From Vitrella brassicaformis CCMP3155 (Eukaryota; Protista; Chromerida), in NCBI GenBank assembly GCA_001179505.1, contig CDMY01000520.1, positions 186,001-250,000 on the forward strand: DNA of 64,000 bases, written 5' to 3'. Under the pieces are notes generated by a model. That model ran no database searches. It saw only the letters and a program-made list of their open reading frames with translations, and was not told the origin of the DNA. Below, in pieces: positions 5,059 to 11,070 of the stretch; the first letter of the stretch is position 1; each line of letters opens with the position of its first letter. Both the position numbers and the translations under genes were made by a program.

Positions 5059-5694
5059 AAATCATGTGCCTGCCTGTGGTGTGTCTGTGCAGGTCCGTCG
5101 ATGCATGTGTTACCCACCGCAGAACATGTCACGATGGATGGCGGCGAACTCAGCGGTCTTCTTGACTGAATCCGCGCCCAGCGTGCTGACCGCCAGGCAG
5201 ATCAGTCCGACCTCTATATCAAACTTTTTCTCCGCCTCACGTATCCCCTCAGCAACCGCACCCAGCACTTCGTCATAGGACAGGGGGTGTGGTAAGCTGG
5301 CGGGCGGGGGGTCAGGCGAGCAATGGGCAGGGGCGTAGCGGAGCTCCAGCAGCTGCACGCCATCACGGGCCTTGTCCTCGCAGACCTCATAAGCGATGCG
5401 GCGGAAGAACTCTGCCTCGCGATAGAGCACCTGGGAGCGGCCGAACACCGACAGAAAGGCTGATAGATTCGGCAGTGGGCGGGAGGGCTGGAAATAATCC
5501 TTGAGATCAGCTTCATGGTCCTCTGTCTGGAGGCCGTATTTGTGCCAGTAGTGGAGGATGGTCGACAGCCGAACAGCACCCTCCAGATGGCAATGCAGCT
5601 CCACCTGCACACACACACAGACACACACACACAGAGGACCAGTTTTTGGCAGATCAACGTATCTCAGCCACAGACCTTCGGCAACGCCTTCCAT
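4283..5694 (-). CDS. ADA: Adenosine deaminase family protein (amidohydrolase TIM barrel); catalytic Glu position is Gln
   Basis: Exons give MEGVAEGLWLRYVDLPK|VELHCHLEG (HxH metal motif), LLELRYAP, GLDVAGSE, TVHCGQD, GATRIGHG, LELSVTSN, VCVNT|DDP and a C-terminal helix ending LAAARG* at 4283. Confidence 0.92.
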
Positions 5695-5783
5695 TGGTCC
5701 ATCTGAGCCCTTGCCGATGGATTTTCTCCCCTCTCTTCTCCTGCGAGCTGGATCGCATCAAAGCGGCGAAACTTGAAGGAACC
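5695..5783. promoter_or_regulatory. Putative bidirectional promoter (ADA-like / UBA-like gene)
   Basis: Only 89 nt between the two divergent start codons. Confidence 0.55.
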
Positions 5784-6563
5784 ATGATGACGGCAGCGGA
5801 AGCATACGTGGCCGTCAGGACGATTGCTGAAGTCACGAGTGAGTTGTTGTCGCGCAGCCCGGCATCCAACTGGGAAGCCAACGAGCGCTACGCATACCTC
5901 ACCCGATGCGCTGCGGAGACCAAATGGACCAAAACCACACGAGGCAACAAGCACCAAGGTGAGACCACAGACGCATCAGCTCTGCAGATCTGTGTGAAAC
6001 TCTAATGGTGTATAAGTGTGCTTGATTCAGTTGGTTACGTGAGTAGCAGCGGTGTGTGGATGCCTCAGTGGATGGCCAAGATGACACCAACTCAGCTCAA
6101 GGAATGGATCATCGACGACCGCAACAGAGTGCCCGACGACGGCATCGCCACATACCCAAGCAGCCCAGCGGAATCATCCCCCTCTCCTTCAATGGCGTCT
6201 GGCGACCCGTCTGCTGATGCGGTGGCGCTGCAGCGGTCGCTGAGGGATGGCGACATTGGTGGGGCGATGTCGGCCGTCACGAGGCTTTGTGCCGCCAGAG
6301 CCGACCTGGAGGTCTTCATCGACCAGGTGTGGATGTGGGTAGTGAGGCTGCCAGTGGAGATGCATGGCGTGTGTGCAATGGATGATTGTTTCACCTCTCT
6401 GTGTGCGCGCGCGCGCGTGTATGTGTGTTAGGCTGAGACGATTCGTCGCGCCAAGCAGTCGATGGGCGGCACTTTGTGTGAGCTGGGCTTCCCCCCTGAG
6501 AGGGTGTTCGCTCTCGTGGAAAACAAGGACAGTCTCGACGCTTGCTTCGCCGAACTCTGCTAG
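5784..6563 (+). CDS. Hypothetical protein with a C-terminal UBA-like helical segment (3 exons)
   Basis: ATG 5784 MMTAAEAYVAV..NKHQ, GT-AG intron, VGYVSSSGVWMPQW..EVFIDQ, intron, AETIRRAKQSMGGTLCELGFPPERVFALVENKDSLDACFAELC*. The LGF motif and terminal ACFAEL helix resemble UBA domains. Confidence 0.6.
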
Positions 6564-7750
6564 CCTCTGCCTCGCTCATCGCTGCCCTTTTCTTTTGGGG
6601 GGGTGTTGATGGCTGGTCATCCGCGAAGAACTGTTGGGTGTGTAGATATCGTGTCTTGTTCGGCCTGGCTGACGTTGGTTGATTCGTTGACTCATGTAAC
6701 GTATCTATCTACCGCTCTAGCCTGATGTGGCGAGATGCCCTTTGCCCTTGTCCATGCGTGAAACAAATCGATCATTGCCAGAATCACGTTGTCTGCGGCT
6801 GCCCCGCCCTGCAACACCGTAGGGCCATCGATAAAAGGCCAACAACAAGCCTGGCCTGAAAATGAGACCGGCCATCCATCCATCCATCCAGTGATAAAGG
6901 GCATGCGACCATCAGGTATCCACAAAGATGCACAAAGGCACCCACCCCCGTCCCCCATCAATCCGATCAACCCACAGACATGAGGACATGCATGCGCATC
7001 TTCCCCATCATGCCCACACACAGTGGCGATACAGGCACTGAGACAGACAGAGATTGAGACGGAGAGAGAGAGAGAGAGAGAGATACAGGCACACATCGAG
7101 GGTCCGTGACACTCAGCGGGGCGCTCCAGTGCGCTCGAAATGTCGTCAGGTGTCCCTCTGACACTCATGCAATGCACACACGCACACATGCACACATCAA
7201 CACATTGACAGAAACGCCACACCCATCGATCGACCTGCAAACGCTTCGCGTGACATGACAGTCAGCAAGCACCCGTCAGTCAGGACCAGCCAGTAGAGTG
7301 AGTAGGAGGGGGGAGGGATTCGGTACCGTACGATACTAACTCGTATGCAGGTGAGTAAGAACTCCCCTAAAGCAGATGGCAGCTGGTCTGTGACCCACTG
7401 GCTCGACTATCACCACGCGCACCACATGCAGACACGACACGACACGCATACGTCCGGCACACACGAGTATCGAGCCAGCAGGGGATACACAAAACGCGCG
7501 TCACGCGCTTGGAAAATCTCAAGGATCGATAAGGGACGACACAGAGACAGACAGACGCCACGAAAAAGCGCTCGACGACCGACTCGTCAACAAGGCGGGC
7601 GCGAGAAGCACAAAGAAGCGTACGAACGAACGAACGAAGGAGAGGAGAAGAGAGGAGGGGGAACATAGGAAGGGGCCAAGGCGTACACATACATACAATG
7701 CAGTCGTGCAGACAGCGACTCAGCCCAATATGTGGGCCAAAAGCCGCCGG

Positions 7751-8703
7751 CTACGCACTGCCATCGCCGTTGGCAAGAGCCGCAGCCTCCCTCTCCTCGA
7801 TGATGCGTTCGACCTCCTCCTTGATGTCGCCGTGCGCCCCGCCATAGCCCGCACCACTCTCAACGCGGTCCACGATCGCCTCGAGCTCGGCATCAGTCAG
7901 ATTGCCCGCATTGCCCCCATGAATGCCGCCATAGCCACTCTCTCCCTCTGCAGTGGCATTGCCGTGCACACCGCCATAACCTACCACGACCAAAGAAAAA
8001 CGAGGGAATGTCCCGAGCTTGCTTGTGTGGGAAGGTCTTCCCTCAGATCGTCTGTTCTGACCTGCACGGGCGCCTTCCGGTGTGGCCTCTTCGGACCCAT
8101 GGATGCCTCCGTAGCCACTCTCTCCCTCTGTCGTCGCGTTGCCGTGCACACCGCCGTAGCCTGACCAGTATTAACCAGACACGACACGAGCATTAAAGAC
8201 AGACACGTGTGCCCGCCCGCATCCGTCAGTCAGACTTTGCCCTCACCAGCGGGAACGCTTTCTGGCGTGGCCGACTCGTCGCCATGGACACCGCCATAGC
8301 CTGACAGCAGACGAGCGAGCAAGAGAGCACCGATTGACGCACTCTAACACATGTGTCTCAATCTCTACATGTGCTAGGTAGATCTACCCTACCTGATTCC
8401 TCCTCGGCATGGTAGCCACCATATCCAGGAGGCACCTCCTCGGCGGACACGTTGGCAGTGCCGTTGTCGTGGCGGCCGCCGTAGCCGGCGCCCTCCACCA
8501 CCTGATAGTCACTTTCGACCTGGGCGCGGCGTCTCTCAGCCGACGTGCGCAGGTGCCTCGATGGGAGGGCCGACGCCTGCACGCCCACACAGAGAAAGAA
8601 AGCAGTGAGCATACCCAGACAGAGATCTTCCACATGGCTGACTGACCAGAGCGATGCAGAGAAGGACCAGAGCGGGCAGCGCGAACAGGTGCGATGGCTT
8701 CAT
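7751..8703 (-). CDS. Secreted 207-aa protein with eight GYGGxH repeats; exons 8647-8703, 8393-8576, 8247-8300, 8062-8160, 7751-7980
   Basis: All four introns are GT-AG. Exon lengths 57+184+54+99+230=624 nt give one open frame: signal peptide MKPSHLFALPALVLLCIALASA, a basic ERRR site, then GYGGRH, GYGGYH, GYGGVHG, GYGGVHG, GYGGIHG, GYGGVHG, GYGGIHG, GYGGAHG separated by acidic spacers. Confidence 0.85.
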
Positions 8704-9003
8704 GGATGATATCTGGCCCTCAGAGCTGCAGCAAGCAAGGCACACGCAAGCAATGGCGTTGCTGAGCGTCCAAGCCTGACGAGGCCCCACCTGCCGAGTG
8801 AAGTGGACGGCGTCTGACAAGATGCCAATTGATGCTTTTGAGGTAGATCTCTTGAGGTTTCAGTACTGGGGCAGGCTGCTGAAGTGCCTGAGCTACGTGG
8901 GGTGCGCAATTTCAGCCAGCGAAGATCTTTTTCAATTGTTTTCGCGCCTGCCCTGGCTCTTTGAGCTTGCGGCACCACTCATCCTAGAAGACGCCGCTGC
9001 AAG

Positions 9004-11070
9004 ATGCAGACGCTGTCGAATTGGGCGAATAACATCCCATCGACGACCTGGTACCGTGCCTTCAAGGCGGCCATCGTCAACCTGATCCCGTTCCCATGGC
9101 GGGCCAACCCGCCCCAGGTGGTGATGCTGGCGTGCGAGTACGACCTCTCCAGCCCCGAGAGCAACAAGCAGTTCCTCGACGACTTCTGCAGCAGGACCCT
9201 CTTCACCTACCGCGACCAGTTCACCCCGATCAGCCAGGACCAGGACATGATTGAGATGGACGCCTCCCCCCCGCCACACGGATTCTCGGCCGTCCACAGG
9301 GAGGCGGGCGGCATCCTCAGCGACGCCGGCTGGGGCTGCATGATCCGCGTCACTCAGATGGCACTCGTCCAGTGCCTCATCTACCACACACTCGGCAGGG
9401 ACTGGCGATTCAACACGCGGGCTGACCTCACACCGGGGGCCACCTTCTGGCAGCTAATAGCGCTGTTCATGGACACCCCGTCCGCCCCCTTCTCGCTGCA
9501 CAACATCGTTAGGGAGGGCCTCAAGCTGGGGAAGCGGCCGAGCGAGTGGTTCGGGCCGACCTCTGGCGCACTTGCCGTCAAGAGCCTGATGGACCAACAC
9601 GGGGCGCAGAGCTGTGGGCTGCGGTGCGTGACCTTCCCTGAGGGCATCATATACACCAACGAGGTATATAGGTGACACGGGCGACCGAACAAATGTGTTC
9701 ATTCAGTGGACTGATTGTGTCTGTGTCTGTCTGTGTGCAGGTCCTTGAGGCCTTCAGTGGCGTCCCACGGAAGGAGGCTGCGGACAAGGCTGCCGGCGCC
9801 TCGTCGAGCAGTGGTGGCCCGTCAGCACCAGCAGGGCCGTCATCATCGCCTTCCGAGTGCCCCACAGCAGATGAGCCACAGGCAGCCCAACAGGCCAAGA
9901 GGGAAAGCAGCGGGCCTGCAGAGGATGTCAGGTGCGTGCGAACAAACGAAGACAGGCAGGGAGAAATCTCTGGCTGACAGGTGTGTGTGTGTGTGTGTGT
10001 GTGTCAGCGGTGTGGTGATATGGTTGTGTCTGCGTCTGGGTGTGGACAGCTTCAACGTTGACAAGTATCAGAGCCCCATCCAGGCCTGTTTCTCCATCCC
10101 ACAGTTCCAGGGCCTTGCAGGCGAGTCCATAGACACCATCCATCCAGCCATCCATCCAGCCATCCATCCATCCATCCACCATTGCACGAACAAAGACATA
10201 CACATGAATCATCCATCATCTGTATGTCTGTGGTTGTGTGCAGGTGGTGGTCCGGCCAACAGCGCGTACTTCTTCGTGGCGGCCAACCGCGAGAACCTCT
10301 ACTTCCTGGACCCTCACTCCAAATGCCAGGTAACACGCACGCACCGATATATGCCTGCAATGCAATGCAAGGCACCCATGGGCAGCGGCACCCGATGCAC
10401 GATTCGCTCTGACTGCCCTCCGCCCCTCCCTGCCTTGTTTCCCTCTCTCCCTCTGTGTGTGTGTGTGTGTGTGTGTGCATGTGATGGTGCCTGCGGTTGG
10501 TTCCTGGTGGATGGAGGTGTGTGTGTCTGGGTGCTGCTGGTGTCGCGATCTGTGCTGCCCCTTTGGCCTCTGCAAACGGCGGCGAACGTGGCGCCACGGC
10601 GGGCAGGCTGCCTTCACCGAGATCCCCTCGCCCACCGCCCCCGAGCAGCTGGCGGCCTTCGCCTGCCAGGTACACCCATCCGAGCCGCGGCAGCTCGCAT
10701 GGTCGTCGCTCAACCCTTCCATGGCACTCGGATTCGTTTGCCAGGTCGGTCGGCCGGTCTGTCACACCGGACCCCCCTCACACGCATCTGCATCAGTGCT
10801 TTTGTGTTGTGTGTCGTGTGGTTGCGTGTGTGCACTGCAGACGGTGGATCAGTACGAAGACCTGTGTGCGCGGCTCAAGGCGGTGGACGCCGACCTGTTC
10901 GAGATCCTGCCCACACGGCCGGAGTACAACTACGAAGGTATGTCTGTCTGTGGGCACTTGCACACAGAAGGGCAGCTGGCAGCTCAGAGAGAGACCGGTT
11001 GTGTGACTCCGTGTGTGTGTGTGTGTGTGTGCAGGCGGCCTCAAGACGGACGAGGAGGACCCCGATTTAG
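9004..11070 (+). CDS. ATG4: Cysteine protease ATG4 (peptidase C54)
   Basis: FTYR, SDAGWGCMIR (catalytic Cys), FGP, LCLRLG, GGPANSAYFFVA, YFLDPH (catalytic Asp/His), NPSMALGF; ends GGLKTDEEDPI* at 11070. Confidence 0.95.

Follow-up and report, generated by a model that had tools for sequence, protein, structure and literature searches.

Among the relatives of apicomplexan parasites, the chromerids stand out as free-living and photosynthetic; at the protein level, to our knowledge, next to nothing is known of the way in which their resistant sporangial walls are constructed. The question addressed here arises from a 64,000-nucleotide stretch of the genome of Vitrella brassicaformis CCMP3155, an alga associated with corals (contig CDMY01000520.1, positions 186,001 to 250,000; hereafter the window), in which eight units of the type GYGGxH are scattered over three minus-strand frames: do these units belong to one gene, and if so, what might its product do? 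An earlier note on this DNA, made from its letters, had spliced the units by hand into a secreted protein and had proposed a new peptide-precursor or cross-linking system. We show that the gene exists and is spliced in this manner, and we argue that its product is best, although tentatively, explained as an uncleaved matrix or wall glycoprotein whose GYGGxH cores act as points of association.

The gene lies on the minus strand (coding sequence, CDS, 8703..7751) and comprises five coding exons and an additional intron in the 5' untranslated region (UTR). Its four CDS introns, all GT..AG, unite the eight units into a single CDS of 624 nt, corresponding to 207 aa and a stop codon. When the open frame 7754-8149 was used in a word search, a single database protein of 207 aa, P0001, was retrieved, and the spliced model is identical to it residue for residue. 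Two JGI transcript-like contigs from two samples, L015 and L016, encode P0001 in uninterrupted form. Each aligned block of these contigs is 100% identical to the window, and the gaps between the blocks coincide with all four CDS introns and with a 65-nt 5'UTR intron (8790-8726); the latter had been overlooked in the hand splicing, the coding exons of which were exact. In addition, runs X1, X2, and X7 contain 0.49-0.50 of the sampled 31-mers, 0.53 being expected if only spliced mRNA were present, and three other runs contain 1.00 of them, as DNA would. By these two lines of evidence for splicing, the JGI contigs and the 31-mer shares, the gene is real, expressed, and spliced as described.

Introns 2, 3, and 4 are all in phase 1, each dividing the first Gly codon of a core, and exons 3 and 4 thus represent symmetrical one-core and two-core modules. 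Exon 4 and the first 80 nt of exon 5 share 81% identity, which reveals an internal duplication; the remainder of the duplicated interval retains no residual similarity. The frame 7751-8149 stays open through intron 4, retention of which would add 27 residues between cores 5 and 6. An origin of intron 4 as an intronised piece of duplicated coding sequence was considered and rejected, the alignment score being matched or exceeded by 406 of 500 shuffles.

The eight cores (GYGGRH, GYGGYH, three GYGGVHG, two GYGGIHG, and GYGGAHG, starting at residues 50, 70, 81, 99, 114, 132, 147, and 176) span residues 50-181 at intervals of 11-29 residues and are set in spacers rich in Glu, Ala, Ser, Thr, and Pro. 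Tyr and His stand invariantly at i and i+4, position x is mainly Val or Ile, and the tripeptides preceding cores 1-8 are EGA, VPP, EES, VPA, GES, ARA, GES, and SGA. The mature chain contains 22% Gly, 14% Glu, and 33 acidic residues, is devoid of Cys, Trp, Phe, and Met, and has an isoelectric point (pI) of about 4.5 and a net charge of about -22. His accounts for 9 of its 185 residues, His and Tyr making up 5% each. AlphaFold2, run without an alignment (mean predicted local distance difference test score, pLDDT, 51), assigned pLDDT values below 50 to residues 46-155, which are predicted to be disordered, and predicted two C-terminal helices (161-172 and 182-201) on either side of the last core.

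When the codons of the five fixed core residues are compared pairwise, synonymous differences account for 76 of 140 comparisons (54%) and amino-acid changes for none; all four Gly codons (GGC/GGT/GGA/GGG), both Tyr codons (TAT/TAC), and both His codons (CAC/CAT) are used, and the spacers between the cores have diverged beyond alignment. Since the eight cores differ in synonymous codons without any amino-acid change, their Tyr and His are, by this internal comparison, held by selection, which bears out the invariance noted earlier. Both residues are invariant at a fixed spacing within a flexible Gly frame, which suggests that they act together. At least one GYGGxH occurs in just 0.45% of shuffles of the mature protein. 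At the DNA level, a search of the 72.7-Mb genome for the GYGGxHG pattern gave 12 occurrences, six in this gene and six elsewhere as unrelated single instances; the reversed-pattern control gave 7.

A second signal of function comes from N-glycosylation. Five sequons (NGT57, NVS61, NAT106, NAT139, and NLT158) hold five of the seven Asn residues, and three of the five begin two residues past a core His. Shuffled sequences would be expected to contain 0.73 sequons (P about 5e-5); with the duplicated exon left out, four are observed and 0.57 expected (P about 9e-4). The genome encodes STT3. Taken together, the codon pattern of the cores and the enrichment in sequons argue for a functional, ER-exposed, and probably glycosylated product (ER, endoplasmic reticulum).

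Relatives of this gene were sought in its own genome (72,700,666 bases on 1064 contigs) and in public collections. The gene is single-copy: a protein search of the genome found no paralogue, and a search for its leader and 5'UTR found no second copy. HMMER against 1.84 billion representatives returned no relative beyond the protein itself; four weak matches, P0002-P0005 (E 1e-6 to 8.5e-4), do not contain the motif and were rejected as homologues, being compositional matches to unrelated repeat proteins. In Pfam, neither the separate exons nor P0001 gave anything above cut-off, the top match being DUF4148 in the signal-peptide region (14.8 bits versus a cut-off of 27), and P0001 did not match the GRP (glycine-rich) family; the ESM Atlas feature search gave no usable match. 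As far as these searches reach, the gene is a lineage-restricted orphan outside any described sequence family, in agreement with the earlier note, which had recognized none. A young, taxonomically restricted gene of little or no function, that is, a repeat expansion transcribed by chance, would likewise have neither homologue nor paralogue, and the recent internal duplication and the low-complexity, disordered chain are in keeping with such an origin. However, it would not be expected to show synonymous divergence with full amino-acid conservation over eight cores, enrichment in sequons, an intact signal peptide, five accurately spliced introns, and two transcript assemblies, and we regard this explanation as very improbable.

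Where the product resides depends on its N-terminus. An n-region, MKPSH, is followed by a 14-residue hydrophobic core, LFALPALVLLCIAL, with a mean Kyte-Doolittle hydropathy of 2.9 and an AlphaFold2 helix at 8-22, and by an ASA/L cleavage motif; these features show a product predicted to go into the ER via a cleavable signal peptide. The earlier description of the protein as secreted therefore holds with respect to entry into the secretory pathway, whereas a destination at the cell surface is less certain: a complex-plastid signal would fit as well, given Leu at +1 and the basic stretch behind it, LPSRHLRTSAERRRAQV (five Arg, three Ser/Thr, and one acidic residue). The N-terminus might accordingly be a bipartite plastid or periplastid signal, composed of the signal peptide and a short, basic, hydroxylated stretch like a transit peptide. 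The protein would in this case not be secreted but work in the complex plastid or one of its outer compartments, where it could, for instance, buffer metals through its acidic residues and His/Tyr or serve as a chaperone. The high-confidence class of ASAFind allows F, Y, W, or L at +1 (PMC12136025), and Phe is not strictly conserved at this site in Vitrella (PMC6668581). On the other hand, the transit-peptide-like stretch is just about 17 residues long and is immediately followed by acidic sequence, the enrichment in sequons is more typical of extracellular proteins, and neither Pfam nor HMMER detected a plastid-related domain or homologue. A plastid location is for these reasons unlikely.

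The same N-terminal region bears on the proposal that the protein is a precursor, cleaved into GYGGxH peptides with a signalling or antimicrobial role or modified enzymatically. The signal peptide, the repeated cores, the acidic spacers, and the small residues ahead of each core would suit a precursor, and a genuine example of this general kind exists in metagenomes (L108, see below). However, the only RxL in the protein is RHL at 26-28 and the only dibasic site is RRR at 34-36 (the ERRR site reported before, which is present together with the cores and sequons in the minus-strand sequence); both are N-terminal to the first core, and neither type of site occurs between the cores. UstYa/DUF3328 (PF11807) gave no match in an exon-by-exon search of the genome, in which the control genomes remained unmatched too, and the kexin P-domain (PF01483) likewise gave no genome match in the exon-by-exon search. 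No P450, tyrosinase, or peroxidase gene is adjacent. Moreover, sequons right behind the cores would load a bulky glycan on each released peptide, and these products, in contrast to known antimicrobial peptides of the Gly/His kind, would be acidic. The reading as a peptide precursor or as a ribosomally synthesized and post-translationally modified peptide (RiPP), for which the i/i+4 rather than i/i+2 arrangement of Tyr and His is also unfavorable, consequently appears quite unlikely and lost the standing it had in the earlier note.

Because there are no processing sites between the cores, we favor a protein that stays intact. We hypothesize, with a probability of about 0.35, that it is a multivalent His/Tyr 'sticker and spacer' glycoprotein of the extracellular matrix or of the sporangial or cell wall. 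After entering the ER, the chain would remain uncleaved. Its eight selected cores, in each of which a flexible Gly frame displays a single Tyr and, four residues on, a single His, would serve as stickers that associate through His-Tyr hydrogen bonding and/or the sharing of Zn2+ or Cu2+ by His (and Tyr); a rise in pH together with metal availability upon secretion could be the trigger. The Glu-rich, glycosylated spacers would keep the chain in solution and hydrated, a further contribution to self-association may come from the two C-terminal helices, and the assembly might then be fixed by Tyr coupling driven by a peroxidase or tyrosinase. Analogues are found in the literature, the His/Tyr sticker of squid-beak peptides being the best documented. 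Squid-beak peptides with at least two GHGLY motifs and a flexible linker undergo phase separation through His-Tyr hydrogen bonding as the pH rises, the jaw protein NVJP-1 carries GYGGH/GYGHG motifs as well as Asp and Glu and assembles with Zn2+ (PMC9999432), and shepherin I uses its His residues to bind Zn2+ and Cu2+ (PMC10698721). In Vitrella, vesicles have been observed to travel to the sporangial or cyst wall, and further secreted proteins of wall type are encoded in the genome (PMC4501334). Features of the sticker-spacer class, which is defined by function and not by sequence, that are present in the Vitrella protein are several Gly-framed His/Tyr motifs, flexible linkers, and a disordered chain with a signal peptide.

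Several observations weigh against this interpretation. A high His content and a near-neutral or basic charge, which also characterize the class, are absent (9 His in 185 residues, charge about -22, pI 4.5); His and Tyr lie far below their levels in jaw, beak, or oocyst-wall proteins, and the strong negative charge works against self-coacervation unless cations or a basic partner are present. As evidence, the peroxidase and tyrosinase genes of the genome, which are unlinked to this gene, are no more than permissive. The transcript contigs come presumably from ordinary cultures and provide no tie to wall formation, and conservation was, without an orthologue, assessed solely among the repeats of one gene. 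A complex prediction with two copies of residues 150-207 gave a score of 0.02 and returned no answer, which speaks neither for self-association nor against it.

Two other uses of the cores deserve to be set beside the sticker-and-spacer glycoprotein. In the first, the protein would be a soluble secreted metal-binding glycoprotein that buffers or scavenges Cu, Zn, Ni, or Fe (or Ca) in the surroundings of the cell and builds no structure. Gly-Gly and a Tyr stand ahead of each His, and repeats of the GGH type are binders of Cu2+ and Zn2+ (PMC10698721); the 33 acidic residues, the pI of 4.5, the lack of Cys after the signal peptide, and the lack of a membrane anchor or C-terminal hydrophobic tail would all fit a soluble binder. 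Nevertheless, with one His per site, the set of ligands is weak next to that of known His-rich binders, His-only metal binding leaves the invariant Tyr and the aliphatic x unexplained, and no metal-transport genes were found nearby, which makes this option doubtful. In the second, the cores would be dedicated cross-linking or metal-bridging sites of a chromerid-specific sporangial-wall chemistry: once secreted, the acidic glycoprotein would assemble into the wall and be locked there by Tyr-Tyr or Tyr-His bonds formed by a peroxidase or tyrosinase, with His assisting the oxidation of Tyr. We consider such a chemistry improbable; if true, it would represent a wall-building system without a described counterpart in alveolates. 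In general terms, cross-linking or metal binding by the cores, as proposed before, remains plausible as a hypothesis.

If the protein is a component of a wall or matrix, it would provide a compact natural protist example of a His/Tyr sticker chemistry otherwise found mainly in animal jaws and beaks, and coccidian oocyst walls, which are cross-linked through Tyr, could be compared with it. Should it prove to be neither, what remains is a transcript-verified orphan, an exon-modular repeat gene under selection. At present, it is a well-documented curiosity rather than a demonstrated new system.

How new the motif is can be judged from other proteins, and here the earlier note overstated its case. 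The Nereis jaw protein NVJP-1 carries GYGGH (PMC9999432), and shepherin I begins with it (PMC10698721). A metagenome scan with a two-core DNA pattern, which required GGC as the first Gly codon and which AT-rich relatives could therefore escape, matched at least 120 contigs, and in 115 of the 120 matches listed the two cores are in frame. The matches listed are all of four kinds: tight (GGYGGxH)n arrays behind signal peptides, tails of RRM proteins, one RKRR-fenced precursor (L108), and GC-rich DNA repeats of an AT-rich genome in which one frame reads GYGGQH; the Vitrella layout, isolated cores in acidic spacers, was not found among them. Pfam offers no named family for the Gly/Tyr/His metagenome proteins. 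On these matches, the GYGGxH hexapeptide is a recurrent low-complexity solution and not unique, and what is apparently new in Vitrella is the layout, that is, isolated cores in acidic, probably glycosylated spacers.

Some of these matches are of interest in their own right. One is a recurrent metagenome protein, probably bacterial (L024, L027, and L063, also L085), which consists of a signal peptide, (GGYGGWH)n, a conserved segment rich in Tyr and Trp, and a two-Cys C-terminal domain; L063 matches no Pfam family. In the open frame of L108 (3-611, plus strand), the Gly/Tyr/His-rich blocks all terminate in GWGRKRR, and an acidic spacer comes after each; antimicrobial-peptide polyproteins cut by a convertase are arranged in this way, which contrasts with the Vitrella protein. 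The GC-rich interspersed repeat occurs in AT-rich contigs (L018, L019, L025, and L026, from one sample with a GC content of about 0.31, and L081 and L121); one of its frames reads QGGYGGQHVPQ, the other two give other peptides, and it is probably non-coding. In L081 and L121, six and three tandem 15-aa repeat units, respectively, stand at the start of a long open frame.

The coordinates of the gene, of its neighbours, and of the unlinked oxidase loci are collected in the table below.

Table. Features of the GYGGxH gene and its surroundings; positions refer to the window unless a contig is named.
Feature	Position	Strand	Remarks
5'UTR exon	8791..8931	-	L015 1-141 = 8931-8791 at 100% identity; contains no ATG; 8931 is the 5' end of transcript contig L015, and the true transcription start may be further upstream
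5'UTR intron, 65 nt, GT..AG	8726..8790	-	Absent from both transcript contigs; junction CGGCAG/CTCTGAGG
5'UTR remainder (8725-8704) and CDS exon 1 (8703-8647)	8647..8725	-	19 aa: signal-peptide n-region and hydrophobic core
Intron 1, 70 nt, GT..AG, phase 0	8577..8646	-	
CDS exon 2	8393..8576	-	Signal-peptide end (ASA/L), basic stretch LPSRHLRTSAERRRAQV with RHL and RRR, cores 1-2 (GYGGRH, GYGGYH), sequons NGT, NVS
Intron 2, 92 nt, GT..AG, phase 1	8301..8392	-	Interrupts first Gly codon of core 3
CDS exon 3, 54 nt, phase 1-1	8247..8300	-	Core 3 (GYGGVHG) and acidic spacer
Intron 3, 86 nt, GT..AG, phase 1	8161..8246	-	Interrupts first Gly codon of core 4
CDS exon 4, 99 nt, phase 1-1	8062..8160	-	Cores 4 and 5, sequon NAT
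Intron 4, 81 nt, GT..AG, phase 1	7981..8061	-	In frame, stop-free; spliced out in both transcript contigs
CDS exon 5	7751..7980	-	Cores 6-8, sequons NAT and NLT, two predicted amphipathic helices (161-172, 182-201) flanking core 8, stop 7753-7751
ATG4/peptidase C54 gene	ATG at 9004	+	Pfam E 1.9e-39
Promoter region common to the GYGGxH and ATG4 genes	8931-9004		
Gene without Pfam match	5744-6563	+	Introns 5959-6030 and 6328-6431; at least 213 aa
Adenosine deaminase, exon for N-terminal half	5113-5694	-	PF00962, E 2.7e-23
Animal-haem-peroxidase (three) and tyrosinase (one) loci	C206:14362-15709, C556:12448-13829, C870:454-1444, C759:118921-119703		

The neighbours of the GYGGxH gene are genes for ATG4/peptidase C54 and adenosine deaminase and a gene without a Pfam match, which confirms that no tailoring enzyme is adjacent; the three animal-haem-peroxidase loci and the one tyrosinase locus of the genome are all unlinked to it. 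The ATG4 gene, whose ATG lies about 70 bp from the 5' end of the transcript contig, is divergent from the GYGGxH gene, and the two have a very short head-to-head promoter region in common. On the other side, the gene without a Pfam match converges on the GYGGxH gene and stands head to head with the adenosine deaminase exon. Both JGI contigs span this convergent gene and the GYGGxH gene, so that either the 3'UTRs overlap or abut within 6563-7750 or unstranded assemblies fused them. Downstream, the contigs extend through 6430 and take in exons separated by plus-strand GT..AG introns, and the assemblies therefore merge the 3'UTR of the GYGGxH gene with its convergent neighbour.

Among known systems, Kex2-processed repeat proteins, dikaritin precursors, and neuropeptide or antimicrobial-peptide precursors share with the Vitrella protein a signal peptide, repeated short cores, and acidic spacers. 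They differ from it in the dibasic site flanking the cores, which is missing in the Vitrella protein, and in the UstYa and kexin P-domain proteins, which were not detected in the genome by the exon-by-exon search; the metagenomic L108, with RKRR after every Gly/Tyr/His block, exemplifies such a precursor. Biarylitides are further removed, since they combine a very short precursor and an i/i+2 arrangement of Tyr and His with an adjacent P450, in contrast to the 207 aa, the i/i+4 arrangement, and the neighbours described here. In diatom biosilica proteins, an RXL stretch that follows the signal peptide is removed by an unknown protease (PMC5525289), and RHL at 26-28 similarly lies in a short stretch after the signal peptide. 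However, the Vitrella stretch comprises 6 residues instead of about 30, and there is no silica wall. Moreover, an estimate from composition puts the chance occurrence of one RxL at about one in four, and the single site is thus not above chance.

The coccidian proteins GAM56 and GAM82, which come from relatives of the chromerids, and the glycine-rich proteins of plant walls are secreted and contain Tyr, and durable walls are believed to result from their oxidative cross-linking. The Vitrella protein shows no detectable homology to them and no Pfam GRP match; its Tyr content is much lower, and its invariant His is without counterpart there. The same GYGGxH hexapeptide, often behind a signal peptide, is found in the plant protein shep-GRP/shepherin I, whose His residues bind metal as noted above, and in many unnamed bacterial and eukaryotic arrays. 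In the (GGYGGxH)n arrays, however, the units run head to tail with almost only Gly between them and are basic or neutral, whereas the Vitrella cores are isolated in acidic spacers.

In architecture, the histidine-rich squid-beak proteins (HBPs; GHGLY-type) and NVJP-1 offer a likeness of another kind, although they come from animals rather than an alga and the searches found no sequence homology between them and the Vitrella protein. They lack its strongly acidic character, its sequons, its long Glu-rich spacers, and its helical tail, and NVJP-1 contains 27 mol% His as compared with about 5% in Vitrella. Assembly in this group requires at least two motifs with flexible linkers, NVJP-1 assembling with Zn2+ and rising pH (PMC9999432). 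What they have in common with the Vitrella protein is a disordered, probably secreted chain in which short, Gly-framed His/Tyr motifs are repeated.

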